A DNA stretch of 64,000 nt from Auanema rhodensis (taxonomy: Eukaryota; Animalia; Nematoda). The position numbers were made by a program, and so were the translations under genes. Location of the stretch: contig OZ059900.1 of NCBI GenBank assembly GCA_964057225.1, positions 14,942,001 through 15,006,000 of the forward strand, in the 5' to 3' direction. Position 1 is the stretch's first letter. Each line of letters starts with the position of its first letter. The notes below the pieces were generated by a model. That model was not told the DNA's origin and made no database searches. It worked only from the letters and a program-made list of their open reading frames with translations. Of the stretch, positions 1,366 through 64,000 are shown one piece after another.

Positions 1366-1434
1366 TTGAATTTGCACTTAGAAACTTTCATTAAGAGTGT
1401 GAGTTTGAATTATAGTAGAAAAATGAAACACTGT

Positions 1435-1589
1435 TGTGGCGTTATACCACAAGTGTATAGTATGGTTGGAAGTAAAACACAAAGCAAATATGTAAAAAAG
1501 GGTTTATTGATGAATTAACAAGACAAGCACGGAATAAAATCACTGACTGCGAACGTTGAAAATGTAAGACCTACTCGCTTATCGCGACA
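1435..1589. mobile_element. 155-bp solo-LTR-like element A, copy 1 (TSD ACTGT at 1430-1434 and 1590-1594)
   Basis: Absent from the standard unit. Begins TGTGGCG and ends CGCGACA (TG..CA with imperfect inverted ends). Flanked by an exact 5-bp duplication of spacer sequence. AATAAA occurs on the minus strand at 1503-1508. Confidence 0.8.
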
Positions 1590-4500
1590 ACTGTCTCTAA
1601 CATATCTTGATTTATGGCCTACTTTACTCAAAGAGCTAATGGAAGTTTGGTGTTAGAATGAACAATTGATTAACGCTGACGTTTCAATTTTTTTCATCGT
1701 AATTGAGATAGAACATTTAAATTAAATGGAAATGTTTAAAAATTTAGAAAAAATCACAAGCTCAAATCACTTTTGAAAAAACAGAAAGTTTAAAACAACC
1801 TTTTTTCTAATAATTATCTTTTTAATTCGACTTTTGGAAGAAAACAAAAATAGCATAACATTCAATAACGATGAATCAGAACAAAAACATTCTCCCCGGC
1901 CGGGAATTGAACCCGGGTCTCGCATGTGACAGACGCGGATACTCACCACTATACTACCGAGGATTGAATTTGCACTTAGAAACTTTCATTAAGAGTGTGA
2001 GTTTGAATTATTTTAGAAAAATGAAACACTGTCTCTAACATATCTTGATTTATGGCCTACTTTACTCAAAGAGCTAATTGAAGTTTGGTGTTAGAATGAA
2101 CAATTGATTAACGCTGACGTTCCATTTTTTTTCATCGTAATTGAGATAGAACATTTAAATTAAATGGAAATGTTTAAAAATTTAGAAAAAATCACAAGCT
2201 CAAATGACTTTTGAAAAAACAGAAAGTTTAAAACAACCTTTTTTCTAATAATTATCTTTTTTATCCGACTTTTGTAAAAAAACAAAAATAGCATAACATT
2301 CAATAACGATGAATCAGAACAAAAACATTCTCCCCGGCCGGGAATTGAACCCGGGTCTCGCATGTGACAGACGCGGATACTCACCACTATACTACCGAGG
2401 ATTGAATTTGCACTTAGAAACTTTCATTAAGAGTGTGAGTTTGAATTATTTTAGAAAAATGAAACACTGTCTCTAACATATCTTGATTTATGGCCTACTT
2501 TACTCAAAGAGCTAATTGAAGTTTGGTGTTAGAATGAACAATTGATTAACGCTGACGTTCCATTTTTTTTCATCGTAATTGAGATAGAACATTTAAATTA
2601 AATGGAAATGTTTAAAAATTTAGAAAAAATCACAAGCTCAAATGACTTTTGAAAAAACAGAAAGTTTAAAACAACCTTTTTTCTAATAATTATCTTTTTT
2701 ATCCGACTTTTGTAAAAAAACAAAAATAGCATAACATTCAATAACGATGAATCAGAACAAAAACATTCTCCCCGGCCGGGAATTGAACCCGGGTCTCGCA
2801 TGTGACAGACGCGGATACTCACCACTATACTACCGAGGATTGAATTTGCACTTAGAAACTTTCATTCAGAGTGTGAGTTTGAATTATAGTAGAAAAATGA
2901 AACACTGTCTCTAACATATCTTGATTTATGGCCTACTTTACTCAAAGAGCTAATTGAAGTTTGGTGTTAGAATGAACAATTGATTAACGCTGACGTTCCA
3001 ATTTTTTTCATCGTATTTGAGATAGAACATTTAAATTAAATGGAAATGTTTAAAAATTTAGAAAAAATCACAAGCTCAAATCACTTTTGAAAAAACAGAA
3101 AGTTTAAAACAACCTTTTTTCTAATAATTATCTTTTTTATCCGACTTTTGTAAAAAAACAAAAATAGCATAACATTCAATAACGATGAATCAGAACAAAA
3201 ACATTCTCCCCGGCCGGGAATTGAACCCGGGTCTCGCATGTGACAGACGCGGATACTCACCACTATACTACCGAGGATTGAATTTGCACTTAGAAACTTT
3301 CATTCAGAGTGTGAGTTTGAATTATAGTAGAAAAATGAAACACTGTCTCTAACATATCTTGATTTATGGCCTACTTTACTCAAAGAGCTAATTGAAGTTT
3401 GGTGTTAGAATGAACAATTGATTAACGCTGACGTTCCAATTTTTTTCATCGTAATTGAGATAGAACATTTAAATTAAATGGAAATGTTTAAAAATTTAGA
3501 AAAAATCACAAGCTCAAATCACTTTTGAAAAAACAGAAAGTTTAAAACAACCTTTTTTCTAATAATTATCTTTTTAATTCGACTTTTGGAAGAAAACAAA
3601 AATAGCATAACATTCAATAACGATGAATCAGAACAAAAACATTCTCCCCGGCCGGGAATTGAACCCGGGTCTCGCATGTGACAGACGCGGATACTCACCA
3701 CTATACTACCGAGGATTGAATTTGCACTTAGAAACTTTCATTAAGAGTGTGAGTTTGAATTATTTTAGAAAAATGAAACACTGTCTCTAACATATCTTGA
3801 TTTATGGCCTACTTTACTCAAAGAGCTAATTGAAGTTTGGTGTTAGAATGAACAATTGATTAACGCTGACGTTCCATTTTTTTTCATCGTAATTGAGATA
3901 GAACATTTAAATTAAATGGAAATGTTTAAAAATTTAGAAAAAATCACAAGCTCAAATGACTTTTGAAAAAACAGAAAGTTTAAAACAACCTTTTTTCTAA
4001 TAATTATCTTTTTTATCCGACTTTTGTAAAAAAACAAAAATAGCATAACATTCAATAACGATGAATCAAAACAAAAACATTCTCCCCGGCCGGGAATTGA
4101 ACCCGGGTCTCGCATGTGACAGACGCGGATACTCACCACTATACTACCGAGGATTGAATTTGCACTTAGAAACTTTCATTCAGAGTGTGAGTTCGAATTA
4201 TAGTAGAAAAATGAAACACTGTCTCTAACATATCTTGATTTATGGCCTACTTTACTCAAAGAGCTAATTGAAGTTTGGTGTTAGAATGAACAATTGATTA
4301 ACGCTGACGTTTCAATTTTTTTCTTCGTAATTGAGATAGAACATTTAAATTAAATGGAAATGTTTAAAAATTTAGAAAAAATCACAAGCTCAAATCACTT
4401 TTGAAAAAACAGAAAGTTTAAAACAACCTTTTTTCTAATAATTATCTTTTTTATCCGACTTTTGGAAGAAAACAAAAATAGCATAACATTCAATAACGAT

Positions 4501-7147
4501 GAATCAGAACAAAAACATTCTCCCCGGCCGGGAATTGAACCCGGGTCTCGCATGTGACAGACGCGGATACTCACCACTATACTACCGAGGATTGAATTTG
4601 CACTTAGAAACTTTCATTAAGAGTGTGAGTTTGAATTATTTTAGAAAAATGAAACACTGTCTCTAACATATCTTGATTTATGGCCTACTTTACTCAAAGA
4701 GCTAATTGAAGTTTGGTGTTAGAATGAACAATTGATTAACGCTGACGTTCCATTTTTTTTCATCGTAATTGAGATAGAACATTTAAATTAAATGGAAATG
4801 TTTAAAAATTTAGAAAAAATCACAAGCTCAAATGACTTTTGAAAAAACAGAAAGTTTAAAACAACCTTTTTTCTAATAATTATCTTTTTTATCCGACTTT
4901 TGTAAAAAAACAAAAATAGCATAACATTCAATAACGATGAATCAGAACAAAAACATTCTCCCCGGCCGGGAATTGAACCCGGGTCTCGCATGTGACAGAC
5001 GCGGATACTCACCACTATACTACCGAGGATTGAATTTGCACTTAGAAACTTTCATTCAGAGTGTGAGTTTGAATTATAGTAGAAAAATGAAACACTGTCT
5101 CTAACATATCTTGATTTATGGCCTACTTTACTCAAAGAGCTAATTGAAGTTTGGTGTTAGAATGAACAATTGATTAACGCTGACGTTCCAATTTTTTTCA
5201 TCGTATTTGAGATAGAACATTTAAATTAAATGGAAATGTTTAAAAATTTAGAAAAAATCACAAGCTCAAATCACTTTTGAAAAAACAGAAAGTTTAAAAC
5301 AACCTTTTTTCTAATAATTATCTTTTTTATCCGACTTTTGTAAAAAAACAAAAATAGCATAACATTCAATAACGATGAATCAGAACAAAAACATTCTCCC
5401 CGGCCGGGAATTGAACCCGGGTCTCGCATGTGACAGACGCGGATACTCACCACTATACTACCGAGGATTGAATTTGCACTTAGAAACTTTCATTCAGAGT
5501 GTGAGTTTGAATTATAGTAGAAAAATGAAACACTGTCTCTAACATATCTTGATTTATGGCCTACTTTACTCAAAGAGCTAATTGAAGTTTGGTGTTAGAA
5601 TGAACAATTGATTAACGCTGACGTTCCAATTTTTTTCATCGTAATTGAGATAGAACATTTAAATTAAATGGAAATGTTTAAAAATTTAGAAAAAATCACA
5701 AGCTCAAATCACTTTTGAAAAAACAGAAAGTTTAAAACAACCTTTTTTCTAATAATTATCTTTTTAATTCGACTTTTGGAAGAAAACAAAAATAGCATAA
5801 CATTCAATAACGATGAATCAGAACAAAAACATTCTCCCCGGCCGGGAATTGAACCCGGGTCTCGCATGTGACAGACGCGGATACTCACCACTATACTACC
5901 GAGGATTGAATTTGCACTTAGAAACTTTCATTAAGAGTGTGAGTTTGAATTATTTTAGAAAAATGAAACACTGTCTCTAACATATCTTGATTTATGGCCT
6001 ACTTTACTCAAAGAGCTAATTGAAGTTTGGTGTTAGAATGAACAATTGATTAACGCTGACGTTCCATTTTTTTTCATCGTAATTGAGATAGAACATTTAA
6101 ATTAAATGGAAATGTTTAAAAATTTAGAAAAAATCACAAGCTCAAATGACTTTTGAAAAAACAGAAAGTTTAAAACAACCTTTTTTCTAATAATTATCTT
6201 TTTTATCCGACTTTTGTAAAAAAACAAAAATAGCATAACATTCAACAACGATGAATCAAAACAAAAACATTCTCCCCGGCCGGGAATTGAACCCGGGTCT
6301 CGCATGTGACAGACGCGGATACTCACCACTATACTACCGAGGATTGAATTTGCACTTAGAAACTTTCATTCAGAGTGTGAGTTCGAATTATAGTAGAAAA
6401 ATGAAACACTGTCTCTAACATATCTTGATTTATGGCCTACTTTACTCAAAGAGCTAATTGAAGTTTGGTGTTAGAATGAACAATTGATTAACGCTGACGT
6501 TTCAATTTTTTTCATCGTAATTGAGATAGAACATTTAAATTAAATGGAAATGTTTAAAAATTTAGAAAAAATCACAAGCTCAAATCACTTTTGAAAAAAC
6601 AGAAAGTTTAAAACAACCTTTTTTCTAATAATTATCTTTTTTATCCGACTTTTGGAAGAAAACAAAAATAGCATAACATTCAATAACGATGAATCAGAAC
6701 AAAAACATTCTCCCCGGCCGGGAATTGAACCCGGGTCTCGCATGTGACAGACGCGGATACTCACCACTATACTACCGAGGATTGAATTTGCACTTAGAAA
6801 CTTTCATTAAGAGTGTGAGTTTGAATTATAGTAGAAAAATGAAACACTGTCTCTAACATATCTTGATTTATGGCCTACTTTACTCAAAGAGCTAATTGAA
6901 GTTTGGTGTTAGAATGAACAATTGATTAACGCTGACGTTCCATTTTTTTTCATCGTAATTGAGATAGAACATTTAAATTAAATGGAAATGTTTAAAAATT
7001 TAGAAAAAATCACAAGCTCAAATCACTTTTGAAAAAACAGAAAGTTTAAAACAACCTTTTTTCTAATAATTATCTTTTTAATTCGACTTTTGGAAGAAAA
7101 CAAAAATAGCATAACATTCAATAACGATGAATCAGAACAAAAACATT

Positions 7148-7219
7148 CTCCCCGGCCGGGAATTGAACCCGGTTCTCGCATGTGACAGACGCGGATACTC
7201 ACCACTATACTACCGAGGA
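7148..7219 (-). tRNA. tRNA-Asp(GTC) variant C48A
   Basis: + strand 'cccggttctcg' (T at 7173); same variant at 14476-14547. Confidence 0.75.
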
Positions 7220-7726
7220 TTGAATTTGCACTTAGAAACTTTCATTAAGAGTGTGAGTTTGAATTATAGTAGAAAAATGAAACACTGTCTCTAACATATC
7301 TTGATTTATGGCCTACTTTACTCAAAGAGCTAATTGAAGTTTGGTGTTAAAATGAACAATTGATTAACGCTGACGTTTCAATTTTTTTCATCGTAATTGA
7401 GATGGAACATTTAAATTAAATGGAAATGTTTAAAAATTTAGAAAAAATCACAAGCTCAAATCACTTTTGAAAAAACAGAAAGTTTAAAACAACCTTTTTT
7501 CTAATAATTATCTTTTTATTTCGACTTTTGGAAGAAAACAAAAATAGCATAACATTCAATAACGACGAATCAGAACAAAAACATTCTCCCCGGCCGGGAA
7601 TTGAACCCGGGTCTCGCATGTGACAGACGCGGATACTCACCACTATACTACCGAGGATTGAATTTGCACTTAGAAACTTTCATTAAGAGTGTGAGTTTGA
7701 ATTATAGTAGAAAAATGAAACACTGT

Positions 7727-7881
7727 TGTGGCGTTATACCACAAGTGTATAGTATGGTTGGAAGTAAAACACAAAGCAAATATGTAAAAAAGGGTTTATT
7801 GATGAATTAACAAGACAAGCACGGAATAAAATCACTGACTGCGAACGTTGAAAATGTAAGACCTACTCGCTTATCGCGACA
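7727..7881. mobile_element. Element A copy 2 (TSD ACTGT)
   Basis: Same sequence, insertion point and TSD as copy 1. Confidence 0.8.
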
Positions 7882-9200
7882 ACTGTCTCTAACATATCTT
7901 GATTTATGGCCTACTTTACTCAAAGAGCTAATTGAAGTTTGGTGTTAGAATGAACAATTGATTAACGCTGACGTTTCAATTTTTTTCATCGTAATTGAGA
8001 TAGAACATTTAAATTAAATGGAAATGTTTAAAAATTTAGAAAAAATCACAAGCTCAAATCACTTTTGAAAAAACAGAAAGTTTAAAACAACCTTTTTTCT
8101 AATAATTATCTTTTTTATCCGACTTTTGTAAAAAAACAAAAATAGCATAACATTCAATAACGATGAATCAGAACAAAAACATTCTCCCCGGCCGGGAATT
8201 GAACCCGGGTCTCGCATGTGACAGACGCGGATACTCACCACTATACTACCGAGGATTGAATTTGCACTTAGAAACTTTCATTAAGAGTGTGAGTTTGAAT
8301 TATAGTAGAAAAATGAAACACTGTCTCTAACATATCTTGATTTATGGCCTACTTTACTCAAAGAGCTAATTGAAGTTTGGTGTTAGAATGAACAATTGAT
8401 TAACGCTGACGTTTCAATTTTTTTCATCGTAATTGAGATAGAACATTTAAATTAAATGGAAATGTTTAAAAATTTAGAAAAAATCACAAGCTCAAATCAC
8501 TTTTGAAAAAACAGAAAGTTTAAAACAACCTTTTTTCTAATAATTATCTTTTTTATCCGACTTTTGGAAGAAAACAAAAATAGCATAACATTCAATAACG
8601 ATGAATCAGAACAAAAACATTCTCCCCGGCCGGGAATTGAACCCGGGTCTCGCATGTGACAGACGCGGATACTCACCACTATACTACCGAGGATTGAATT
8701 TGCACTTAGAAACTTTCATTAAGAGTGTGAGTTTGAATTATAGTAGAAAAATGAAACACTGTCTCTAACATATCTTGATTTATGGCCTACTTTACTCAAA
8801 GAGCTAATTGAAGTTTGGTGTTAAAATGAACAATTGATTAACGCTGACGTTTCAATTTTTTTCATCGTAATTGAGATGGAACATTTAAATTAAATGGAAA
8901 TGTTTAAAAATTTAGAAAAAATCACAAGCTCAAATCACTTTTGAAAAAACAGAAAGTTTAAAACAACCTTTTTTCTAATAATTATCTTTTTATTTCGACT
9001 TTTGGAAGAAAACAAAAATAGCATAACATTCAATAACGACGAATCAGAACAAAAACATTCTCCCCGGCCGGGAATTGAACCCGGGTCTCGCATGTGACAG
9101 ACGCGGATACTCACCACTATACTACCGAGGATTGAATTTGCACTTAGAAACTTTCATTAAGAGTGTGAGTTTGAATTATAGTAGAAAAATGAAACACTGT

Positions 9201-9355
9201 TGTGGCGTTATACCACAAGTGTATAGTATGGTTGGAAGTAAAACACAAAGCAAATATGTAAAAAAGGGTTTATTGATGAATTAACAAGACAAGCACGGAA
9301 TAAAATCACTGACTGCGAACGTTGAAAATGTAAGACCTACTCGCTTATCGCGACA
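9201..9355. mobile_element. Element A copy 3 (TSD ACTGT)
   Basis: Same as copy 1; 1474 bp (three units) after copy 2. Confidence 0.8.
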
Positions 9356-12285: not shown

Positions 12286-12357
12286 CTCCCCGGCCGGCAA
12301 TTGAACCCGGGTCTCGCATGTGACAGACGCGGATACTCACCACTATACTACCGAGGA
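12286..12357 (-). pseudogene. tRNA-Asp(GTC) C61G (breaks G53-C61 pair and B box)
   Basis: + strand 'ccggcaattgaa' (C at 12298). Confidence 0.65.
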
Positions 12358-14475
12358 TTGAATTTGCACTTAGAAACTTTCATTCAGAGTGTGAGTTTGA
12401 ATTATAGTAGAAAAATGAAACACTGTCTCTAACATATCTTGATTTATGGCCTACTTTACTCAAAGAGCTAATTGAAGTTTGGTGTTAGAATGAACAATTG
12501 ATTAACGCTGACGTTCCAATTTTTTTCATCGTATTTGAGATAGAACATTTAAATTAAATGGAAATGTTTAAAAATTTAGAAAAAATCACAAGCTCAAATC
12601 ACTTTTGAAAAAACAGAAAGTTTAAAACAACCTTTTTTCTAATAATTATCTTTTTTATCCGACTTTTGTAAAAAAACAAAAATAGCATAACATTCAATAA
12701 CGATGAATCAGAACAAAAACATTCTCCCCGGCCGGGAATTGAACCCGGGTCTCGCATGTGACAGACGCGGATACTCACCACTATACTACCGAGGATTGAA
12801 TTTGCACTTAGAAACTTTCATTCAGAGTGTGAGTTTGAATTATAGTAGAAAAATGAAACACTGTCTCTAACATATCTTGATTTATGGCCTACTTTACTCA
12901 AAGAGCTAATTGAAGTTTGGTGTTAGAATGAACAATTGATTAACGCTGACGTTCCAATTTTTTTCATCGTAATTGAGATAGAACATTTAAATTAAATGGA
13001 AATGTTTAAAAATTTAGAAAAAATCACAAGCTCAAATCACTTTTGAAAAAACAGAAAGTTTAAAACAACCTTTTTTCTAATAATTATCTTTTTAATTCGA
13101 CTTTTGGAAGAAAACAAAAATAGCATAACATTCAATAACGATGAATCAGAACAAAAACATTCTCCCCGGCCGGGAATTGAACCCGGGTCTCGCATGTGAC
13201 AGACGCGGATACTCACCACTATACTACCGAGGATTGAATTTGCACTTAGAAACTTTCATTAAGAGTGTGAGTTTGAATTATTTTAGAAAAATGAAACACT
13301 GTCTCTAACATATCTTGATTTATGGCCTACTTTACTCAAAGAGCTAATTGAAGTTTGGTGTTAGAATGAACAATTGATTAACGCTGACGTTCCATTTTTT
13401 TTCATCGTAATTGAGATAGAACATTTAAATTAAATGGAAATGTTTAAAAATTTAGAAAAAATCACAAGCTCAAATGACTTTTGAAAAAACAGAAAGTTTA
13501 AAACAACCTTTTTTCTAATAATTATCTTTTTTATCCGACTTTTGTAAAAAAACAAAAATAGCATAACATTCAATAACGATGAATCAAAACAAAAACATTC
13601 TCCCCGGCCGGGAATTGAACCCGGGTCTCGCATGTGACAGACGCGGATACTCACCACTATACTACCGAGGATTGAATTTGCACTTAGAAACTTTCATTCA
13701 GAGTGTGAGTTCGAATTATAGTAGAAAAATGAAACACTGTCTCTAACATATCTTGATTTATGGCCTACTTTACTCAAAGAGCTAATTGAAGTTTGGTGTT
13801 AGAATGAACAATTGATTAACGCTGACGTTTCAATTTTTTTCATCGTAATTGAGATAGAACATTTAAATTAAATGGAAATGTTTAAAAATTTAGAAAAAAT
13901 CACAAGCTCAAATCACTTTTGAAAAAACAGAAAGTTTAAAACAACCTTTTTTCTAATAATTATCTTTTTTATCCGACTTTTGGAAGAAAACAAAAATAGC
14001 ATAACATTCAATAACGATGAATCAGAACAAAAACATTCTCCCCGGCCGGGAATTGAACCCGGGTCTCGCATGTGACAGACGCGGATACTCACCACTATAC
14101 TACCGAGGATTGAATTTGCACTTAGAAACTTTCATTAAGAGTGTGAGTTTGAATTATAGTAGAAAAATGAAACACTGTCTCTAACATATCTTGATTTATG
14201 GCCTACTTTACTCAAAGAGCTAATTGAAGTTTGGTGTTAGAATGAACAATTGATTAACGCTGACGTTCCATTTTTTTTCATCGTAATTGAGATAGAACAT
14301 TTAAATTAAATGGAAATGTTTAAAAATTTAGAAAAAATCACAAGCTCAAATCACTTTTGAAAAAACAGAAAGTTTAAAACAACCTTTTTTTTAATAATTA
14401 TCTTTTTAATTCGACTTTTGGAAGAAAACAAAAATAGCATAACATTCAATAACGATGAATCAGAACAAAAACATT

Positions 14476-14547
14476 CTCCCCGGCCGGGAATTGAACCCGG
14501 TTCTCGCATGTGACAGACGCGGATACTCACCACTATACTACCGAGGA
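14476..14547 (-). tRNA. tRNA-Asp(GTC) variant C48A
   Basis: Same variant as 7148-7219, 7328 bp away. Confidence 0.75.
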
Positions 14548-14913
14548 TTGAATTTGCACTTAGAAACTTTCATTAAGAGTGTGAGTTTGAATTATAGTAG
14601 AAAAATGAAACACTGTCTCTAACATATCTTGATTTATGGCCTACTTTACTCAAAGAGCTAATTGAAGTTTGGTGTTAAAATGAACAATTGATTAACGCTG
14701 ACGTTTCAATTTTTTTCATCGTAATTGAGATAGAACATTTAAATTAAATGGAAATGTTTAAAAATTTAGAAAAAATCACAAGCTCAAATCACTTTTGAAA
14801 AAACAGAAAGTTTAAAACAACCTTTTTTCTAATAATTATCTTTTTATTTCGACTTTTGGAAGAAAACAAAAATAGCATAACATTCAATAACGACGAATCA
14901 GAACAAAAACATT

Positions 14914-14985
14914 CTCCCCGGCCGGGAATTGAACCCGGGTCTCACATGTGACAGACGCGGATACTCACCACTATACTACCGAGGA
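14914..14985 (-). tRNA. tRNA-Asp(GTC) variant C42U (G28.U42 wobble)
   Basis: + strand 'ctcacatgtg' (A at 14944). Confidence 0.8.
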
Positions 14986-15054
14986 TTGAATTTGCACTTA
15001 GAAACTTTCATTAAGAGTGTGAGTTTGAATTATAGTAGAAAAATGAAACACTGT

Positions 15055-15209
15055 TGTGGCGTTATACCACAAGTGTATAGTATGGTTGGAAGTAAAACAC
15101 AAAGCAAATATGTAAAAAAGGGTTTATTGATGAATTAACAAGACAAGCACGGAATAAAATCACTGACTGCGAACGTTGAAAATGTAAGACCTACTCGCTT
15201 ATCGCGACA
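15055..15209. mobile_element. Element A copy 4 (TSD ACTGT)
   Basis: Same as copy 1; 7328 bp after copy 2. Confidence 0.8.
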
Positions 15210-16020: not shown

Positions 16021-16527
16021 TTGAATTTGCACTTAGAAACTTTCATTAAGAGTGTGAGTTTGAATTATAGTAGAAAAATGAAACACTGTCTCTAACATAT
16101 CTTGATTTATGGCCTACTTTACTCAAAGAGCTAATTGAAGTTTGGTGTTAGAATGAACAATTGATTAACGCTGACGTTTCAATTTTTTTCATCGTAATTG
16201 AGATAGAACATTTAAATTAAATGGAAATGTTTAAAAATTTAGAAAAAATCACAAGCTCAAATCACTTTTGAAAAAACAGAAAGTTTAAAACAACCTTTTT
16301 TCTAATAATTATCTTTTTTATCCGACTTTTGTAAAAAAACAAAAATAGCATAACATTCAATAACGATGAATCAGAACAAAAACATTCTCCCCGGCCGGGA
16401 ATTGAACCCGGGTCTCGCATGTGACAGACGCGGATACTCACCACTATACTACCGAGGATTGAATTTGCACTTAGAAACTTTCATTAAGAGTGTGAGTTTG
16501 AATTATAGTAGAAAAATGAAACACTGT

Positions 16528-16682
16528 TGTGGCGTTATACCACAAGTGTATAGTATGGTTGGAAGTAAAACACAAAGCAAATATGTAAAAAAGGGTTTAT
16601 TGATGAATTAACAAGACAAGCACGGAATAAAATCACTGACTGCGAACGTTGAAAATGTAAGACCTACTCGCTTATCGCGACA
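16528..16682. mobile_element. Element A copy 5 (TSD ACTGT)
   Basis: Same as copy 1; 1473 bp after copy 4. Confidence 0.8.
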
Positions 16683-26252: not shown

Positions 26253-29200
26253 TTGAATTTGCACTTAGAAACTTTCATTAAGAGTGTGAGTTTGAATTAT
26301 AGTAGAAAAATGAAACACTGTCTCTAACATATCTTGATTTATGGCCTACTTTACTCAAAGAGCTAATGGAAGTTTGGTGTTAGAATGAACAATTGATTAA
26401 CGCTGACGTTTCAATTTTTTTCATCGTAATTGAGATAGAACATTTAAATTAAATGGAAATGTTTAAAAATTTAGAAAAAATCACAAGCTCAAATCACTTT
26501 TGAAAAAACAGAAAGTTTAAAACAACTTTTTTTCTAATAATTATCTTTTTTATCCGACTTTTGTAAAAAAACAAAAATAGCATAACATTCAATAACGATG
26601 AATCAGAACAAAAACATTCTCCCCGGCCGGGAATTGAACCCGGGTCTCGCATGTGACAGACGCGGATACTCACCACTATACTACCGAGGATTGAATTTGC
26701 ACTTAGAAACTTTCATTAAGAGTGTGAGTTTGAATTATAGTAGAAAAATGAAACACTGTCTCTAACATATCTTGATTTATGGCCTACTTTACTCAAAGAG
26801 CTAATTGAAGTTTGGTGTTAGAATGAACAATTGATTAACGCTGACGTTCCATTTTTTTTCATCGTAATTGAGATAGAACATTTAAATTAAATGGAAATGT
26901 TTAAAAATTTAGAAAAAATCACAAGCTCAAATCACTTTTGAAAAAACAGAAAGTTTAAAACAACCTTTTTTCTAATAATTATCTTTTTAATTCGACTTTT
27001 GGAAGAAAACAAAAATAGCATAACATTCAATAACGATGAATCAGAACAAAAACATTCTCCCCGGCCGGGAATTGAACCCGGGTCTCGCATGTGACAGACG
27101 CGGATACTCACCACTATACTACCGAGGATTGAATTTGCACTTAGAAACTTTCATTAAGAGTGTGAGTTTGAATTATAGTAGAAAAATGAAACACTGTCTC
27201 TAACATATCTTGATTTATGGCCTACTTTACTCAAAGAGCTAATGGAAGTTTGGTGTTAGAATGAACAATTGATTAACGCTGACGTTTCAATTTTTTTCAT
27301 CGTAATTGAGATAGAACATTTAAATTAAATGGAAAAGTTTAAAAATTTAGAAAAAATCACAAGCTCAAATCACTTTTGGAAAAACAGAAAGTTTAAAACA
27401 ACCTTTTTTCTAATAATTATCTTTTTTATCCGACTTTTGTAAAAAAACAAAAATAGCATAACATTCAATAACGATGAATCAGAACGAAAACATTCTCCCC
27501 GGCCGGGAATTGAACCCGGGTCTCGCATGTGACAGACGCGGATACTCACCACTATACTACCGAGGATTGAATTTGCACTTAGAAACTTTCATTAAGAGTG
27601 TGAGTTTGAATTATAGTAGAAAAATGAAACACTGTCTCTAACATATCTTGATTTATGGCCTACTTTACTCAAAGAGCTAATTGAAGTTTGGTGTTAGAAT
27701 GAACAATTGATTAACGCTGACGTTTCAATTTTTTTCATCGTAATTGAGATAGAACATTTAAATTAAATGGAAATGTTTAAAAATTTAGAAAAAATCACAA
27801 GCTCAAATCACTTTTGAAAAAACAGAAAGTTTAAAACAACCTCTTTTCTAATAATTATCTTTTTTATCCGACTTTTGTAAAAAAACAAAAATAGCATAAC
27901 ATTCAATAACGATGAATCAGAACAAAAACATTCTCCCCGGCCGGGAATTGAACCCGGGTCTCGCATGTGACAGACGCGGATACTCACCACTATACTACCG
28001 AGGATTGAATTTGCATTTAGAAACTTTCATTCAGAGTGTGAGTTCGAATTATAGTAGAAAAATGAAACACTGTCTCTAACATATCTTGATTTATGGCCTA
28101 CTTTACTCAAAGAGCTAATTGAAGTTTGGTGTTAAAATGAACAATTGATTAACGCTGACGTTCCATTTTTTTTCATCGTAATTGAGATAGAACATTTAAA
28201 TTAAATGGAAATGTTTAAAAATTTAGAAAAAATCACAAGCTCAAATCACTTTTGAAAAAACAGAAAGTTTAAAACAACCTTTTTTCTAATAATTATCTTT
28301 TTAATTCGACTTTTGGAAGAAAACAAAAATAGCATAACATTCAATAACGATGAATCAGAACAAAAACATTCTCCCCGGCCGGGAATTGAACCCGGGTCTC
28401 GCATGTGACAGACGCGGATACTCACCACTATACTACCGAGGATTGAATTTGCACTTAGAAACTTTCATTAAGAGTGTGAGTTTGAATTATAGTAGAAAAA
28501 TGAAACACTGTCTCTAACATATCTTGATTTATGGCCTACTTTACTCAAAGAGCTAATGGAAGTTTGGTGTTAGAATGAACAATTGATTAACGCTGACGTT
28601 TCAATTTTTTTCATCGTAATTGAGATAGAACATTTAAATTAAATGGAAAAGTTTAAAAATTTAGAAAAAATCACAAGCTCAAATCACTTTTGGAAAAACA
28701 GAAAGTTTAAAACAACCTTTTTTCTAATAATTATCTTTTTTATCCGACTTTTGTAAAAAAACAAAAATAGCATAACATTCAATAACGATGAATCAGAACG
28801 AAAACATTCTCCCCGGCCGGGAATTGAACCCGGGTCTCGCATGTGACAGACGCGGATACTCACCACTATACTACCGAGGATTGAATTTGCACTTAGAAAC
28901 TTTCATTAAGAGTGTGAGTTTGAATTATAGTAGAAAAATGAAACACTGTCTCTAACATATCTTGATTTATGGCCTACTTTACTCAAAGAGCTAATTGAAG
29001 TTTGGTGTTAGAATGAACAATTGATTAACGCTGACGTTTCAATTTTTTTCATCGTAATTGAGATAGAACATTTAAATTAAATGGAAATGTTTAAAAATTT
29101 AGAAAAAATCACAAGCTCAAATCACTTTTGAAAAAACAGAAAGTTTAAAACAACCTCTTTTCTAATAATTATCTTTTTTATCCGACTTTTGTAAAAAAAC

Positions 29201-31874
29201 AAAAATAGCATAACATTCAATAACGATGAATCAGAACAAAAACATTCTCCCCGGCCGGGAATTGAACCCGGGTCTCGCATGTGACAGACGCGGATACTCA
29301 CCACTATACTACCGAGGATTGAATTTGCATTTAGAAACTTTCATTCAGAGTGTGAGTTCGAATTATAGTAGAAAAATGAAACACTGTCTCTAACATATCT
29401 TGATTTATGGCCTACTTTACTCAAAGAGCTAATTGAAGTTTGGTGTTAAAATGAACAATTGATTAACGCTGACGTTCCATTTTTTTTCATCGTAATTGAG
29501 ATAGAACATTTAAATTAAATGGAAATGTTTAAAAATTTAGAAAAAATCACAAGCTCAAATCACTTTTGAAAAAACAGAAAGTTTAAAACAACCTTTTTTC
29601 TAATAATTATCTTTTTAATTCGACTTTTGGAAGAAAACAAAAATAGCATAACATTCAATAACGATGAATCAGAACAAAAACATTCTCCCCGGCCGGGAAT
29701 TGAACCCGGGTCTCGCATGTGACAGACGCGGATACTCACCACTATACTACCGAGGATTGAATTTGCACTTAGAAACTTTCATTAAGAGTGTGAGTTTGAA
29801 TTATAGTAGAAAAATGAAACACTGTCTCTAACATATCTTGATTTATGGCCTACTTTACTCAAAGAGCTAATGGAAGTTTGGTGTTAGAATGAACAATTGA
29901 TTAACGCTGACGTTTCAATTTTTTTCATCGTAATTGAGATAGAACATTTAAATTAAATGGAAAAGTTTAAAAATTTAGAAAAAATCACAAGCTCAAATCA
30001 CTTTTGGAAAAACAGAAAGTTTAAAACAACCTTTTTTCTAATAATTATCTTTTTTATCCGACTTTTGTAAAAAAACAAAAATAGCATAACATTCAATAAC
30101 GATGAATCAGAACGAAAACATTCTCCCCGGCCGGGAATTGAACCCGGGTCTCGCATGTGACAGACGCGGATACTCACCACTATACTACCGAGGATTGAAT
30201 TTGCACTTAGAAACTTTCATTAAGAGTGTGAGTTTGAATTATAGTAGAAAAATGAAACACTGTCTCTAACATATCTTGATTTATGGCCTACTTTACTCAA
30301 AGAGCTAATTGAAGTTTGGTGTTAGAATGAACAATTGATTAACGCTGACGTTTCAATTTTTTTCATCGTAATTGAGATAGAACATTTAAATTAAATGGAA
30401 ATGTTTAAAAATTTAGAAAAAATCACAAGCTCAAATCACTTTTGAAAAAACAGAAAGTTTAAAACAACCTCTTTTCTAATAATTATCTTTTTTATCCGAC
30501 TTTTGTAAAAAAACAAAAATAGCATAACATTCAATAACGATGAATCAGAACAAAAACATTCTCCCCGGCCGGGAATTGAACCCGGGTCTCGCATGTGACA
30601 GACGCGGATACTCACCACTATACTACCGAGGATTGAATTTGCATTTAGAAACTTTCATTCAGAGTGTGAGTTCGAATTATAGTAGAAAAATGAAACACTG
30701 TCTCTAACATATCTTGATTTATGGCCTACTTTACTCAAAGAGCTAATTGAAGTTTGGTGTTAAAATGAACAATTGATTAACGCTGACGTTTCAATTTTTT
30801 TCATCGTAATTGAGATAGAACATTTAAATTAAATGGAAATGTTTAAAAATTTAGAAAAAATCACAAGCTCAAATCACTTTTGAAAAAACAGAAAGTTTAA
30901 AACAACCTTCTTTCTAATAATTATCTTTTTAATTCGACTTTTGGAAGAAAACAAAAATAGCATAACATTCAATAACGATGAATCAGAACAAAAACATTCT
31001 CCCCGGCCGGGAATTGAACCCGGGTCTCGCATGTGACAGACGCGGATACTCACCACTATACTACCGAGGATTGAATTTGCACTTAGAAACTTTCATTCAG
31101 AGTGTGAGTTCGAATTATAGTAGAAAAATGAAACACTGTCTCTAACATATCTTGATTTATGGCCTACTTTACTCAAAGAGCTAATTGAAGTTTGGTGTTA
31201 AAATGAACAATTGATTAACGCTGACGTTTCAATTTTTTTCATCGTAATTGAGATAGAACATTTAAATTAAATGGAAATGTTTAAAAATTTAGAAAAAATC
31301 ACAAGCTCAAATCACTTTTGAAAAAACAGAAAGTTTAAAACAACCTTTTTTCTAATAATTATCTTTTTAATTCGACTTTTGGAAGAAAACAAAAATAGCA
31401 TAACATTCAATAACGATGAATCAGAACAAAAACATTCTCCCCGGCCGGGAATTGAACCCGGGTCTCGCATGTGACAGACGCGGATACTCACCACTATACT
31501 ACCGAGGATTGAATTTGCACTTAGAAACTTTCATTAAGAGTGTGAGTTTGAATTATAGTAGAAAAATGAAACACTGTCTCTAACATATCTTGATTTATGG
31601 CCTACTTTACTCAAAGAGCTAATTGAAGTTTGGTGTTAAAATGAACAATTGATTAACGCTGACGTTTCAATTTTTTTCATCGTAATTGAGATAGAACATT
31701 TAAATTAAATGGAAATGTTTAAAAATTTAGAAAAAATCACAAGCTCAAATCACTTTTGAAAAAACAGAAAGTTTAAAACAACCTTTTTTCTAATAATTAT
31801 CTTTTTAATTCGACTTTTGGAAGAAAACAAAAATAGCATAACATTCAATAACGATGAATCAGAACAAAAACATT

Positions 31875-32382: not shown

Positions 32383-35376
32383 TTGAATTTGCACTTAGAA
32401 ACTTTCATTAAGAGTGTGAGTTTGAATTATAGTAGAAAAATGAAACACTGTCTCTAACATATCTTGATTTATGGCCTACTTTACTCAAAGAGCTAATGGA
32501 AGTTTGGTGTTAGAATGAACAATTGATTAACGCTGACGTTTCAATTTTTTTCATCGTAATTGAGATAGAACATTTAAATTAAATGGAAATGTTTAAAAAT
32601 TTAGAAAAAATCACAAGCTCAAATCACTTTTGAAAAAACAGAAAGTTTAAAACAACTTTTTTTCTAATAATTATCTTTTTTATCCGACTTTTGTAAAAAA
32701 ACAAAAATAGCATAACATTCAATAACGATGAATCAGAACAAAAACATTCTCCCCGGCCGGGAATTGAACCCGGGTCTCGCATGTGACAGACGCGGATACT
32801 CACCACTATACTACCGAGGATTGAATTTGCACTTAGAAACTTTCATTAAGAGTGTGAGTTTGAATTATAGTAGAAAAATGAAACACTGTCTCTAACATAT
32901 CTTGATTTATGGCCTACTTTACTCAAAGAGCTAATTGAAGTTTGGTGTTAGAATGAACAATTGATTAACGCTGACGTTCCATTTTTTTTCATCGTAATTG
33001 AGATAGAACATTTAAATTAAATGGAAATGTTTAAAAATTTAGAAAAAATCACAAGCTCAAATCACTTTTGAAAAAACAGAAAGTTTAAAACAACCTTTTT
33101 TCTAATAATTATCTTTTTAATTCGACTTTTGGAAGAAAACAAAAATAGCATAACATTCAATAACGATGAATCAGAACAAAAACATTCTCCCCGGCCGGGA
33201 ATTGAACCCGGGTCTCGCATGTGACAGACGCGGATACTCACCACTATACTACCGAGGATTGAATTTGCACTTAGAAACTTTCATTAAGAGTGTGAGTTTG
33301 AATTATAGTAGAAAAATGAAACACTGTCTCTAACATATCTTGATTTATGGCCTACTTTACTCAAAGAGCTAATGGAAGTTTGGTGTTAGAATGAACAATT
33401 GATTAACGCTGACGTTTCAATTTTTTTCATCGTAATTGAGATAGAACATTTAAATTAAATGGAAAAGTTTAAAAATTTAGAAAAAATCACAAGCTCAAAT
33501 CACTTTTGGAAAAACAGAAAGTTTAAAACAACCTTTTTTCTAATAATTATCTTTTTTATCCGACTTTTGTAAAAAAACAAAAATAGCATAACATTCAATA
33601 ACGATGAATCAGAACGAAAACATTCTCCCCGGCCGGGAATTGAACCCGGGTCTCGCATGTGACAGACGCGGATACTCACCACTATACTACCGAGGATTGA
33701 ATTTGCACTTAGAAACTTTCATTAAGAGTGTGAGTTTGAATTATAGTAGAAAAATGAAACACTGTCTCTAACATATCTTGATTTATGGCCTACTTTACTC
33801 AAAGAGCTAATTGAAGTTTGGTGTTAGAATGAACAATTGATTAACGCTGACGTTTCAATTTTTTTCATCGTAATTGAGATAGAACATTTAAATTAAATGG
33901 AAATGTTTAAAAATTTAGAAAAAATCACAAGCTCAAATCACTTTTGAAAAAACAGAAAGTTTAAAACAACCTCTTTTCTAATAATTATCTTTTTTATCCG
34001 ACTTTTGTAAAAAAACAAAAATAGCATAACATTCAATAACGATGAATCAGAACAAAAACATTCTCCCCGGCCGGGAATTGAACCCGGGTCTCGCATGTGA
34101 CAGACGCGGATACTCACCACTATACTACCGAGGATTGAATTTGCATTTAGAAACTTTCATTCAGAGTGTGAGTTCGAATTATAGTAGAAAAATGAAACAC
34201 TGTCTCTAACATATCTTGATTTATGGCCTACTTTACTCAAAGAGCTAATTGAAGTTTGGTGTTAAAATGAACAATTGATTAACGCTGACGTTTCAATTTT
34301 TTTCATCGTAATTGAGATAGAACATTTAAATTAAATGGAAATGTTTAAAAATTTAGAAAAAATCACAAGCTCAAATCACTTTTGAAAAAACAGAAAGTTT
34401 AAAACAACCTTCTTTCTAATAATTATCTTTTTAATTCGACTTTTGGAAGAAAACAAAAATAGCATAACATTCAATAACGATGAATCAGAACAAAAACATT
34501 CTCCCCGGCCGGGAATTGAACCCGGGTCTCGCATGTGACAGACGCGGATACTCACCACTATACTACCGAGGATTGAATTTGCACTTAGAAACTTTCATTC
34601 AGAGTGTGAGTTCGAATTATAGTAGAAAAATGAAACACTGTCTCTAACATATCTTGATTTATGGCCTACTTTACTCAAAGAGCTAATTGAAGTTTGGTGT
34701 TAAAATGAACAATTGATTAACGCTGACGTTTCAATTTTTTTCATCGTAATTGAGATAGAACATTTAAATTAAATGGAAATGTTTAAAAATTTAGAAAAAA
34801 TCACAAGCTCAAATCACTTTTGAAAAAACAGAAAGTTTAAAACAACCTTTTTTCTAATAATTATCTTTTTAATTCGACTTTTGGAAGAAAACAAAAATAG
34901 CATAACATTCAATAACGATGAATCAGAACAAAAACATTCTCCCCGGCCGGGAATTGAACCCGGGTCTCGCATGTGACAGACGCGGATACTCACCACTATA
35001 CTACCGAGGATTGAATTTGCACTTAGAAACTTTCATTAAGAGTGTGAGTTTGAATTATAGTAGAAAAATGAAACACTGTCTCTAACATATCTTGATTTAT
35101 GGCCTACTTTACTCAAAGAGCTAATTGAAGTTTGGTGTTAAAATGAACAATTGATTAACGCTGACGTTTCAATTTTTTTCATCGTAATTGAGATAGAACA
35201 TTTAAATTAAATGGAAATGTTTAAAAATTTAGAAAAAATCACAAGCTCAAATCACTTTTGAAAAAACAGAAAGTTTAAAACAACCTTTTTTCTAATAATT
35301 ATCTTTTTAATTCGACTTTTGGAAGAAAACAAAAATAGCATAACATTCAATAACGATGAATCAGAACAAAAACATT

Positions 35377-35447
35377 CTCCCCGGCCGGGATTGAACCCGG
35401 GTCTCGCATGTGACAGACGCGGATACTCACCACTATACTACCGAGGA
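35377..35447 (-). pseudogene. tRNA-Asp(GTC) with 1-nt T-loop deletion
   Basis: Same deletion as 26182-26252. Confidence 0.6.
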
Positions 35448-38400
35448 TTGAATTTGCACTTAGAAACTTTCATTAAGAGTGTGAGTTTGAATTATAGTAG
35501 AAAAATGAAACACTGTCTCTAACATATCTTGATTTATGGCCTACTTTACTCAAAGAGCTAATGGAAGTTTGGTGTTAGAATGAACAATTGATTAACGCTG
35601 ACGTTTCAATTTTTTTCATCGTAATTGAGATAGAACATTTAAATTAAATGGAAATGTTTAAAAATTTAGAAAAAATCACAAGCTCAAATCACTTTTGAAA
35701 AAACAGAAAGTTTAAAACAACTTTTTTTCTAATAATTATCTTTTTTATCCGACTTTTGTAAAAAAACAAAAATAGCATAACATTCAATAACGATGAATCA
35801 GAACAAAAACATTCTCCCCGGCCGGGAATTGAACCCGGGTCTCGCATGTGACAGACGCGGATACTCACCACTATACTACCGAGGATTGAATTTGCACTTA
35901 GAAACTTTCATTAAGAGTGTGAGTTTGAATTATAGTAGAAAAATGAAACACTGTCTCTAACATATCTTGATTTATGGCCTACTTTACTCAAAGAGCTAAT
36001 TGAAGTTTGGTGTTAGAATGAACAATTGATTAACGCTGACGTTCCATTTTTTTTCATCGTAATTGAGATAGAACATTTAAATTAAATGGAAATGTTTAAA
36101 AATTTAGAAAAAATCACAAGCTCAAATCACTTTTGAAAAAACAGAAAGTTTAAAACAACCTCTTTTCTAATAATTATCTTTTTTATCCGACTTTTGTAAA
36201 AAAACAAAAATAGCATAACATTCAATAACGATGAATCAGAACAAAAACATTCTCCCCGGCCGGGAATTGAACCCGGGTCTCGCATGTGACAGACGCGGAT
36301 ACTCACCACTATACTACCGAGGATTGAATTTGCATTTAGAAACTTTCATTCAGAGTGTGAGTTCGAATTATAGTAGAAAAATGAAACACTGTCTCTAACA
36401 TATCTTGATTTATGGCCTACTTTACTCAAAGAGCTAATTGAAGTTTGGTGTTAAAATGAACAATTGATTAACGCTGACGTTCCATTTTTTTTCATCGTAA
36501 TTGAGATAGAACATTTAAATTAAATGGAAATGTTTAAAAATTTAGAAAAAATCACAAGCTCAAATCACTTTTGAAAAAACAGAAAGTTTAAAACAACCTT
36601 TTTTCTAATAATTATCTTTTTAATTCGACTTTTGGAAGAAAACAAAAATAGCATAACATTCAATAACGATGAATCAGAACAAAAACATTCTCCCCGGCCG
36701 GGAATTGAACCCGGGTCTCGCATGTGACAGACGCGGATACTCACCACTATACTACCGAGGATTGAATTTGCACTTAGAAACTTTCATTAAGAGTGTGAGT
36801 TTGAATTATAGTAGAAAAATGAAACACTGTCTCTAACATATCTTGATTTATGGCCTACTTTACTCAAAGAGCTAATGGAAGTTTGGTGTTAGAATGAACA
36901 ATTGATTAACGCTGACGTTTCAATTTTTTTCATCGTAATTGAGATAGAACATTTAAATTAAATGGAAAAGTTTAAAAATTTAGAAAAAATCACAAGCTCA
37001 AATCACTTTTGGAAAAACAGAAAGTTTAAAACAACCTTTTTTCTAATAATTATCTTTTTTATCCGACTTTTGTAAAAAAACAAAAATAGCATAACATTCA
37101 ATAACGATGAATCAGAACGAAAACATTCTCCCCGGCCGGGAATTGAACCCGGGTCTCGCATGTGACAGACGCGGATACTCACCACTATACTACCGAGGAT
37201 TGAATTTGCACTTAGAAACTTTCATTAAGAGTGTGAGTTTGAATTATAGTAGAAAAATGAAACACTGTCTCTAACATATCTTGATTTATGGCCTACTTTA
37301 CTCAAAGAGCTAATTGAAGTTTGGTGTTAGAATGAACAATTGATTAACGCTGACGTTTCAATTTTTTTCATCGTAATTGAGATAGAACATTTAAATTAAA
37401 TGGAAATGTTTAAAAATTTAGAAAAAATCACAAGCTCAAATCACTTTTGAAAAAACAGAAAGTTTAAAACAACCTCTTTTCTAATAATTATCTTTTTTAT
37501 CCGACTTTTGTAAAAAAACAAAAATAGCATAACATTCAATAACGATGAATCAGAACAAAAACATTCTCCCCGGCCGGGAATTGAACCCGGGTCTCGCATG
37601 TGACAGACGCGGATACTCACCACTATACTACCGAGGATTGAATTTGCATTTAGAAACTTTCATTCAGAGTGTGAGTTCGAATTATAGTAGAAAAATGAAA
37701 CACTGTCTCTAACATATCTTGATTTATGGCCTACTTTACTCAAAGAGCTAATTGAAGTTTGGTGTTAAAATGAACAATTGATTAACGCTGACGTTTCAAT
37801 TTTTTTCATCGTAATTGAGATAGAACATTTAAATTAAATGGAAATGTTTAAAAATTTAGAAAAAATCACAAGCTCAAATCACTTTTGAAAAAACAGAAAG
37901 TTTAAAACAACCTTCTTTCTAATAATTATCTTTTTAATTCGACTTTTGGAAGAAAACAAAAATAGCATAACATTCAATAACGATGAATCAGAACAAAAAC
38001 ATTCTCCCCGGCCGGGAATTGAACCCGGGTCTCGCATGTGACAGACGCGGATACTCACCACTATACTACCGAGGATTGAAGTTGCACTTAGAAACTTTCA
38101 TTAAGAGTGTGAGTTTGAATTATAGTAGAAAAATGAAACACTGTCTCTAACATATCTTGATTTATGGCCTACTTTACTCAAAGAGCTAATGGAAGTTTGG
38201 TGTTAGAATGAACAATTGATTAACGCTGACGTTTCAATTTTTTTCATCGTACTTGAGATAGAACATTTAAATTAAATGGAAATGTTTAAAAATTTAGAAA
38301 AAATCACAAGCTCAAATCACTTTTGAAAAAACAGAAAGTTTAAAACAACTTTTTTTCTAATAATTATCTTTTTTATCCGACTTTTGTAAAAAAACAAAAA

Positions 38401-60900: not shown

Positions 60901-63414
60901 AATTATAGTAGAAAAATGAAACACTGTCTCTAACATAGCTTGATTTATGGCCTACTTTACTCAAAGAGCTAATGGAAGTTTGGTGTTAGAATGAACAATT
61001 GATTAACGCTGACGTTTCAATTTTTTTCATCGTACTTGAGATAGAACATTTAAATTAAATGGAAATGTTTAAAAATTTAGAAAAAATCACAAGCTCAAAT
61101 CACTTTTGAAAAAACAGAAAGTTTAAAACAACTTTTTTTCTAATAATTATCTTTTTTATCCGACTTTTGTAAAAAAACAAAAATAGCATAACATTCAATA
61201 ACGATGAATCAGAACAAAAACATTCTCCCCGGCCGGGAATTGAACCCGGGTCTCGCATGTGACAGACGCGGATACTCACCACTATACTACCGAGGATTGA
61301 ATTTGCACTTAGAAACTTTCTTTAAGAGTGTGAGTTTGAATTATAGTAGAAAAATGAAACACTGTCTCTAACATATCTTGATTTATGGCCTACTTTACTC
61401 AAAGAGCTAATTGAAGTTTGGTGTTAAAATGAACAATTGATTAACGCTGACGTTTCAATTTTTTTCATCGTACTTGAGATAGAACATTTAAATTAAATGG
61501 AAGTGTTTAAAAATTTAGAAAAAATCACAAGCTCAAATCACTTTTGAAAAAACAGAAAGTTTAAAACAACTTTTTTTCTAATAATTATCTTTTTTATCCA
61601 ACTTTTGTAAAAAAACAAAAATAGCATAACACTCAATAACGATGAATCAGAACAAAAACATTCTCCCCGGCCGGGAATTGAACCCGGGTCTCGCATGTGA
61701 CAGACGCGGATACTCACCACTATACTACCGAGGATTGAATTTGCACTTAGAAACTTTCATTAAGAGTGTGAGTTTGAATTATAGTAGAAAAATGAAACAC
61801 TGTCTCTAACATATCTTGATTTATGGCCTACTTTACTCAAAGAGCTAATTGAAGTTTGGTGTTAGAATGAACAATTGATTAACGCTGACGTTTCAATTTT
61901 TTTCATCGTAATTGAGATAGAACATTTAAATTAAATGGAAATGTTTAAAAATTTAGAAAAAATCACAAGCTCAAATCACTTTTGAAAAAACAGAAAGTTT
62001 AAAACAACCTTTTTTCTAATAATTATCTTTTTTATCCGACTTTTGTAAAAAAACAAAAATAGCATAACATTCAATAACGATGAATCAGAACAAAAACATT
62101 CTCCCCGGCCGGGAATTGAACCCGGGTCTCGCATGTGACAGACGCGGATACTCACCACTATACTACCGAGGATTGAATTTGCACTTAGAAACTTTCACTA
62201 AGAGTGTGAGTTTGAATTATAGTAGAAAAATGAAACACTGTCTCTAACATATCTTGATTTATGGCCTACTTTACTCAAAGAGCTAATTGAAGTTTGGTGT
62301 TAGAATGAACAATTGATTAACGCTGACGTTTCAATTTTTTTCATCGTAATTGAGATAGAACATTTAAATTAAATGGAAATGTTTAACGACTTAGAAAAAA
62401 AACACAAGCTCAAATCACTTTTGAAAAAACAGAAAGTTTAAAACAACCTTTTTTCTAATAATTATCTTTTTTATCCGACTTTTGGAAGAAAAAAAAATAG
62501 CATAACATTCAATAACGATGAATCAGAACAAAAACATTCTCCCCGGCCGGGAATTGAACCCGGGTCTCGCATGTGACAGACGCGGATACTCACCACTATA
62601 CTACCGAGGATTGAATTTGCACTTAGAAACTTTCATTAAGAGTGTGAGTTTGAATTATAGTAGAAAAATGAAACACTGTCTCTAACATATCTTGATTTAT
62701 GGCCTACTTTACTCAAAGAGCTAATGGAAGTTTGGTGTTAGAATGAACAATTGATTAACGCTGACGTTTCAATTTTTTTCATCGTACTTGAGATAGAACA
62801 TTTAAATTAAATGGAAATGTTTAAAAATTTAGAAAAAATCACAAGCTCAAATCACTTTTGAAAAAACAGAAAGTTTAAAACAACTTTTTTTCTAATAATT
62901 ATCTTTTTTATCCGACTTTTGTAAAAAAACAAAAATAGCATAACATTCAATAACGATGAATCAGAACAAAAACATTCTCCCCGGCCGGGAATTGAACCCG
63001 GGTCTCGCATGTGACAGACGCGGATACTCACCACTATACTACCGAGGATTGAATTTGCACTTAGAAACTTTCTTTAAGAGTGTGAGTTTGAATTATAGTA
63101 GAAAAATGAAACACTGTCTCTAACATATCTTGATTTATGGCCTACTTTACTCAAAGAGCTAATTGAAGTTTGGTGTTAAAATGAACAATTGATTAACGCT
63201 GACGTTTCAATTTTTTTCATCGTAATTGAGATAGAACATTTAAATTAAATGGAAATGTTTAAAAATTTAGAAAAAATCACAAGCTCAAATCACTTTTGAA
63301 AAAACAGAAAGTTTAAAACAACCTTTTTTCTAATAATTATCTTTTTAATTCGACTTTTGGAAGAAAACAAAAATAGCATAACATTCAATAACGATGAATC
63401 AGAACAAAAACATT

Positions 63415-63486
63415 CTCCCCGGCCGGGAATTGAACCCGGGTCTCGCATGTGACAGACGCGGATACTCACCACTATACTACCGAGGA
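63415..63486 (-). tRNA. tRNA-Asp(GTC), consensus; last complete copy, with element B upstream
   Basis: Intact cloverleaf. Confidence 0.96.
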
Positions 63487-63549
63487 TTGAATTTGCACTT
63501 AGAAACTTTCATTAAGAGTGTGAGTTTGAATTATAGTAGAAAAATGAAA

Positions 63550-63849
63550 TGTCGCTTTGGCGAAGGTATTCGGTTGTCGGTATTCCGCTGAGAATTAATA
63601 GAACAGATAGTCAGTGGTAGAATGCTTTATTAAAGAGAAAGTTAACAATATCAACAAAATATAGATCGTCTATACTCCGTTGAAGTAAGTTGAGGTATAT
63701 CGTATTTTCCGATCCCAAAGATGAAGATATGGGAAGGCGGGCCGAAAAGTACAATCTGAAATAGACAAAGTAAAGGAAAACGATAAAAACAAAACTGAAA
63801 TGGAACAAAACATAGAAAAAAGAATAAAAAATAATCGCTAACCGCGACA
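63550..63849. mobile_element. 300-bp solo-LTR-like element B (TSD TGAAA at 63545-63549 and 63850-63854)
   Basis: Absent from all other units. Perfect 6-bp inverted ends TGTCGC...GCGACA and an exact 5-bp duplication of spacer sequence; the normal unit resumes (cactgtctct...) afterwards. AATAAA occurs on the minus strand at 63626-63631. Confidence 0.85.
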
Positions 63850-64000
63850 TGAAACACTGTCTCTAACATATCTTGATTTATGGCCTACTTTACTCAAAGA
63901 GCTAATTGAAGTTTGGTGTTAGAATGAACAATTGATTAACGCTGACGTTTCAATTTTTTTCATCGTAATTGAGATAGAACATTCAAATTAAATAGAAATG

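Follow-up and report, generated by a model that had tools for sequence, protein, structure and literature searches.

A tRNA-Asp array broken by two kinds of insertion

The 64,000-nt stretch analysed here (the window) comes from the nematode Auanema rhodensis (assembly GCA_964057225.1, contig OZ059900.1, positions 14,942,001 to 15,006,000 of the forward strand). The entire window is a head-to-tail array of a 438-bp repeat whose units are ~98% identical to each other (TRF) and each carry one tRNA-Asp(GTC) gene; ARAGORN finds 143 of these genes, on the minus strand and at 438-bp spacing. The array is broken at six places only, five of them occupied by copies of a 155-bp element, which we call A, and one by a 300-bp element, which we call B. 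Each element lies upstream of a tRNA-Asp gene and is bounded by a target-site duplication (TSD). The features on which the argument turns are listed here in window coordinates, with the basis for each in brackets.

1 to 64000, minus strand: 438-bp units in tandem, one tRNA-Asp(GTC) gene per unit (ARAGORN, TRF)
1294 to 1365, minus strand: tRNA-Asp gene adjoining A copy 1, with one T-loop change private to that copy (ARAGORN, Rfam)
1435 to 1589, plus strand: element A copy 1, 155 bp, TGTGGCG...CGCGACA (TSD, empty units)
1572 to 1589, plus strand: end common to A and B, A side, 15 of 18 bases as in 63832 to 63849 (alignment)
7727 to 7881, plus strand: element A copy 2, identical, same junctions
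9201 to 9355, plus strand: element A copy 3, identical, same junctions
15055 to 15209, plus strand: element A copy 4, identical, same junctions
16528 to 16682, plus strand: element A copy 5, identical, same junctions
63415 to 63486, minus strand: tRNA-Asp gene adjoining B, of the majority sequence (ARAGORN, Rfam)
63550 to 63849, plus strand: element B, 300 bp, TGTCGC...CGCGACA (TSD, empty units, read contigs)
63832 to 63849, plus strand: end common to A and B, B side (alignment)

Copy 1 of A stands between ACTGT at 1430-1434 and the same pentamer at 1590-1594, so that its target is -65 to -69 relative to the 5′ end of the tRNA at 1365, and B stands between TGAAA at 63545-63549 and at 63850-63854, its target being -59 to -63 relative to the tRNA 5′ end at 63486. 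Since each pentamer is single in empty units (GAAAAATGAAACACTGTCTC), both elements entered the array by insertion and duplicated 5 bp in doing so. B could formally be read instead with a duplication of 6 bp, ATGAAA, and an element one base shorter; we favour 5 bp, both by the TG...CA rule and by the parallel with A. The two insertions can be read directly from the window, as can their ends, duplications, positions and orientation.

One insertion of A, multiplied within the array

The five copies of A are 100% identical, junctions included, and all occupy one position in the unit, successive copies being 14, 3, 13, and 3 units apart. Moreover, they lie inside repeated blocks: the units at 14475, 14913 (A), 15511, and 15949 correspond to those at 16386 (A), 16984, and 17422, and a second A-bearing pair of blocks is formed by the units at 7147, 7585 (A), and 8183 and those at 8621, 9059 (A), and 9657. 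The five copies are one integration, duplicated later by unequal exchange within the array; as all stem from a single insertion, the number of independent events remains two. No insertions beyond A and B were found across the 143 units. An odd-looking unit at 62100, considered as another insertion, carries only offsetting 1-bp indels.

The array itself has a higher-order structure in which 3-unit and 5-unit patterns of variants recur (for example at 27056-30122 and at 33186-37565) and entire multi-unit blocks are duplicated, and these recurring patterns and blocks point to frequent unequal exchange. Of the 143 tRNA genes 120 are identical, and the 23 that deviate from the majority mostly do so by one change common to duplicated blocks. 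The gene adjoining A copy 1 has the T-loop TTCAGTT instead of TTCAATT and scores 50.3 bits with Rfam, compared with 55.4 bits for the gene with TTCAATT. An Rfam search of the unit returned the tRNA as the sole match. Each unit also contains a TATA-like CTATAAT (window 1410-1418) at about -50 to -44 on the tRNA strand, between the tRNA and both insertion sites, a position farther upstream than is usual for an RNA polymerase III (Pol III) TATA box. A 2026 preprint on Auanema rhodense reports 19,554 tRNA loci and places tandem tRNA arrays among the germline-restricted repeats.

A and B share one end

The right ends of A and B are alike over 18 nt (TACTCGCTTATCGCGACA in A and TAATCGCTAACCGCGACA in B, identical at 15 of the 18 positions), and a search of the window with this end gives 6 matches where 0.06 would be expected, every one of them at A or B. 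The common end faces away from the tRNA in both elements, and A and B are therefore in the same orientation. A global alignment of A with B has a z score of 3.8 when the 18-nt end is included and 1.6 when it is left out; the interiors are unrelated, and the end is the only significant likeness. Because that end explains the significant similarity between them, we assign A and B to two families that have related ends; the reading that A arose from B by deletion is ruled out, similarity beyond the 18 nt not being significant. The common end is probably the one to which an integrase binds.

An earlier note on this DNA, made from the letters alone, had described A and B as insertions of these lengths, duplications, and distances from the tRNA, had counted them as two integration events on the strength of their different lengths, TSDs, and interiors, and had reported a common terminus directed away from the tRNA in both. 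The duplications and the empty units confirm that both insertions are real; the five identical copies of A, which the note does not mention, leave the count at two; and the common terminus is the 18-nt end described above.

Element B in public sequencing reads

We compared window positions 63300-64000, an interval that covers B and does not include A, with Logan contigs from four public runs bearing three organism labels. The empty site (a joint from 63543 to 63849 or from 63544 to 63850) is present in read contigs of all four runs, and so is B-like sequence, in numerous variants of 85-100% identity. One of these variants has a 72-bp internal deletion (63637 to 63710) followed by 108 nt of sequence foreign to the array, at a depth of ~1270; in run X4, near-identical pieces of B continue into non-array sequence for 469 nt on the left and 161 nt on the right; and in run X1, five flanks behind 63849 are mutually discordant (agreement 0.58). 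From the variants and from the non-array, discordant flanks it follows that B is a diverged multi-copy family present in more than one sequence context. When word depth is summed in runs X1 and X3, B equals the array spacer, whereas B occurs once per 143 units here; depth is not copy number, and the read data suggest that B-like copies lie in other amplified repeats.

The same contigs bear on the tRNA gene as well. In all four read sets the tRNA-Asp core (63396-63491) is far deeper than the array spacer (for X4 and X7, both under other organism labels, ~1.7-2.9e5 in the core and ~18-250 in the spacer), and many different flanks abut 63403-63407 and 63484-63487. The deep core and its varied flanks indicate that tRNA-Asp genes also occur in other very abundant spacer contexts. 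In one X7 contig a sequence ending in CCAGATGCGACA is fused directly to the tRNA-Asp body at 63442; this joint represents either a variant tRNA whose 3′ half differs or a GCGACA-ending element inserted within a tRNA gene.

Class of the elements

All four ends fit TGTNR...YNACA (TGTGG...CGACA in A and TGTCG...CGACA in B), and TGTNR is the end pattern both of Gypsy-type long terminal repeats (LTRs) and of Ginger transposons (PMC2836005). As would be expected of solo LTRs, i) both elements have TG...CA ends with short inverted ends, which extend over 6-7 bp only; ii) both have a TSD within the range of 4-6 bp together with an empty site; and iii) B, at least, is a multi-copy family found in different contexts. 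Neither element folds end to end into a hairpin (z +1.6 for A and -0.9 for B), and an Rfam and ARAGORN search of both found no tRNA or other match. Taken together, the short inverted ends, the 5-bp TSD, the absence of end-to-end folding, and the absence of a tRNA head make solo LTRs, or LTR-type remnants of very small size, the best reading of A and B, a class assignment that we infer from these structural features.

Three other classes were considered. A miniature inverted-repeat transposable element (MITE) or hairpin element, the alternative that the earlier note had kept in reserve, was not borne out and can be ruled out, as the elements have no long inverted ends and do not fold; a tRNA-derived short interspersed element (SINE) is likewise ruled out by the lack of a tRNA-like head in A or B and by their TG...CA ends. 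The third class is a non-autonomous cut-and-paste DNA transposon moved by an integrase-like transposase of the Ginger2/TDD type. Ginger1 and Ginger2/TDD elements have TGTNR ends and a Gypsy-like integrase, Dictyostelium TDD-4 and TDD-5 make a 5-bp TSD (PMC2836005), and A and B are small and without open reading frames (ORFs), B being abundant besides; however, the inverted ends of Ginger1 and Ginger2 measure 40-270 bp and the metazoan families make a 4-bp TSD (PMC2836005), whereas A and B have inverted ends of 6-7 bp, a 5-bp TSD, and no fold-back. We consider a Ginger-type origin very unlikely, and return to solo LTRs or LTR-type remnants in what follows.

Exact look-up of the ORFs of A and B and of the array unit found no match, nor did a homology search with the 79-aa ORF of B; exact-pattern scans with the ends of A and B found nothing in a public genome collection and nothing in a viral collection; and the one hit of a metagenome scan with these ends, a 20-mer (L001), is a chance match, having nothing else in common with B and no tRNA. 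In the 30-nt flank consensus sequences of B-like read contigs there is no clear TGG-type primer-binding site (PBS) and no clear purine tract. The left flank of a B-like contig from run X3 (at the place corresponding to 63550) contains an 11-mer, ACTTCCAACCA, that is the reverse complement of TGGTTGGAAGT in A (window 1461-1471). As a pointer to a leader or PBS-like motif common to both it is weak; a match of this length was reached in 66 of 5000 shuffles, before correction for several ends, and loses significance once corrected, so that we do not use it as evidence.

Two insertions within 6 bp of each other

The two independent insertions, in the same orientation, are centred on -67 (A) and -61 (B), and thus lie 6 bp apart; their different lengths, TSDs, and interiors establish that they were separate integrations. 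Two random hits would fall within 6 bp of each other in a 438-bp unit with a probability of 13/438, or 3%, and of 1.5% if they must also agree in orientation, which is the few percent that the earlier note had allowed for chance. Coincidence combined with tolerance would then hold that two unrelated insertions fell 6 bp apart by chance and were able to persist in a large, redundant, and probably germline-only array. That there are two events only gives this explanation some force: the probability is 1.5-3% per pair, but many windows were scanned and the pattern was selected post hoc, and an array that readily multiplies one insertion (A fivefold) can make a single event mimic a pattern. On the other hand, A and B agree in orientation and in having a related end, which is what a choice of the site by related integrases would predict, and there is no other insertion elsewhere in the 143 units. 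Nor does tolerance alone explain the shared site, since purifying selection on the site of insertion should be weak where the array holds at least 143 genes that are redundant with one another. We think coincidence unlikely.

A hotspot that has nothing to do with Pol III is also improbable in our view, and would require that the integrases prefer something about the 438-bp repeat itself, be it DNA sequence, bend, or chromatin, rather than how far off a transcription complex lies. Both sites do fall in one 16-bp stretch (AAATGAAACACTGTCT) of one repeat, and the data cover one type of Pol III gene only; against this, the two target pentamers and their immediate flanks have no motif in common, and the sequence preference of retroviral-type integrases is usually weak. 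The absence of a common target motif mildly favours position over sequence as what the two insertions share. Judging by footprints of the Pol III initiation factor TFIIIB, positions -59 to -69 relative to the mature 5′ end would lie immediately upstream of where the complex is expected.

The account that we put forward, tentatively and with slightly less than an even chance of being right, is that members of two related LTR-type families inserted independently of each other within a short interval upstream of tRNA-Asp, probably because they target the Pol III complex, and that the array then multiplied one of them. Specifically, i) A and B would derive from two retroelement families that are related to each other and have integrases of retroviral type recognising similar ends (TGTSGCG...); ii) a single integration of each element, through a staggered cut of 5 bp, would have taken place at -67 (A) or -61 (B) from a tRNA-Asp gene and in one orientation; iii) the internal parts would have been lost through recombination between LTRs; iv) the unit bearing A would then have been copied to five places by unequal exchange; v) the sites would most likely lie so close together because integration favours a narrow interval immediately upstream of where TFIIIB is expected; and vi) this preference would come from an integrase tethered to the Pol III machinery, in analogy with Ty3, DGLT-A, and TRE5-A. 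Solo-LTR formation, targeting, and tethering are, like the LTR class itself, what we infer from the observed insertions.

Several observations weigh against this account. Neither element was seen as paired LTRs around gag-pol with a PBS and a polypurine tract, no reverse transcriptase or integrase sequence was seen, and 155 bp is small for an LTR. The strand cues expected of LTRs conflict: the plus strand of A and B is purine- and A-rich, as retroelement sense strands often are, which argues for plus, whereas the minus strand has AATAAA at much the same distance from the left end, 71 nt in A and 77 nt in B, which argues for minus, and both AATAAA and TATA-like motifs can be found on both strands. 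The abundance of B could reflect co-amplification with tandem repeats rather than many transpositions; the independent events number only two, both in one type of repeat; the pattern was picked out after the fact from a large scan; and a distance of -59 to -69 matches that of no characterised LTR element.

The proposal of the earlier note, a family of LTR elements that targets tRNA genes, therefore stands in part. In its favour are two independent insertions of integrase type in the same orientation, Gypsy-like TGTNR ends, and the multi-copy nature of B; targeting itself, with two events in one repeat, is plausible and not shown, and a single repeat gives no means of telling a Pol III-determined position from a local hotspot.

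We would also entertain, as a bolder possibility about which we are more doubtful than hopeful, that an animal (nematode) lineage of LTR elements has an integrase tethered to Pol III and inserts in one orientation ~59-76 bp upstream of tRNA genes, and that giant, probably germline-only arrays provide such elements with a safe haven in which they are multiplied along with the genes. If so, LTR elements would have come to target tRNA genes a third time independently, the earlier two origins being in fungi and in social amoebae, and for the first time in Metazoa; safe-haven targeting would have evolved outside compact genomes too, with a new distance window and in tRNA arrays that are reportedly discarded from body cells; a new interface between an integrase and Pol III would become available for study; and transposon targeting, satellite-like amplification of genes, and programmed DNA elimination would be linked. 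We would stress that this animal case is a well-founded candidate and not a demonstration.

Comparison with known systems

No account of LTR elements directed at tRNA genes in a nematode or any other animal came up in literature searches, which is an absence in the literature searched and not proof, and the tRNA-targeting retrotransposons listed in Table 1 of a 2018 review (PMC5911963) come from fungi and social amoebae only. The distances given there are 1-10 bp from the start site for Ty3, Tj1, and Yarrowia lipolytica Tyl3, Ylt1, and Tyl6 (1-4 bp from the transcription start site for Ty3 itself); 6-30 bp for Tca8; 13-33 bp for DGLT-A; 40-54 bp for TRE5; 39-64 bp for NLTR-B; and a window of ~1 kb for Ty1, Ty2, and Ty4 (PMC5911963).

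The fungal Ty3/gypsy elements, Ty3 of S. cerevisiae and Tj1 of S. japonicus among them, resemble A and B in their TG...CA ends, 5-bp TSD, and narrow window upstream of tRNA genes, which they reach by contact between integrase and TFIIIB (PMC5911963); Ty3 and Tj1 differ in inserting 1-10 bp from the Pol III start and in having fungal hosts, whereas A and B lie -59 to -69 from the mature 5′ end, in an animal, and no integrase was seen for them. Ty1 of S. cerevisiae, a copia element tethered by Pol III subunits, likewise has a 5-bp TSD and integrates on the upstream side of Pol III genes, past the TFIIIB footprint (PMC5911963), but does so over a broad, nucleosome-periodic window of ~1 kb, compared with 11 bp for A and B.

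Among the social amoebae, the Ty3/gypsy elements DGLT-A and Skipper-2 of Dictyostelium are LTR elements at a fixed distance from tRNA genes that survive mostly as fragments or solo LTRs; they differ from A and B in their amoebozoan host and in that DGLT-A inserts 13-33 bp upstream in either orientation and Skipper-2 downstream (PMC5911963). TRE5-A of D. discoideum and NLTR-B of P. pallidum are non-LTR elements, and TRE5 shares with A and B a fixed orientation of insertion (PMC5911963); both are nonetheless of L1 type, insert by target-primed reverse transcription, and have neither TG...CA ends nor a 5-bp TSD. Among animal elements, Dada DNA transposons specialise in multicopy small-RNA genes, tRNA genes included, but they are cut-and-paste elements with other ends and enter the RNA gene itself, at a particular sequence (PMC3706591, PMC8869645). 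The interval occupied by A and B resembles that of TRE5 and NLTR-B in its distance from the tRNA gene, and that of Ty3 and DGLT-A in the type of element.

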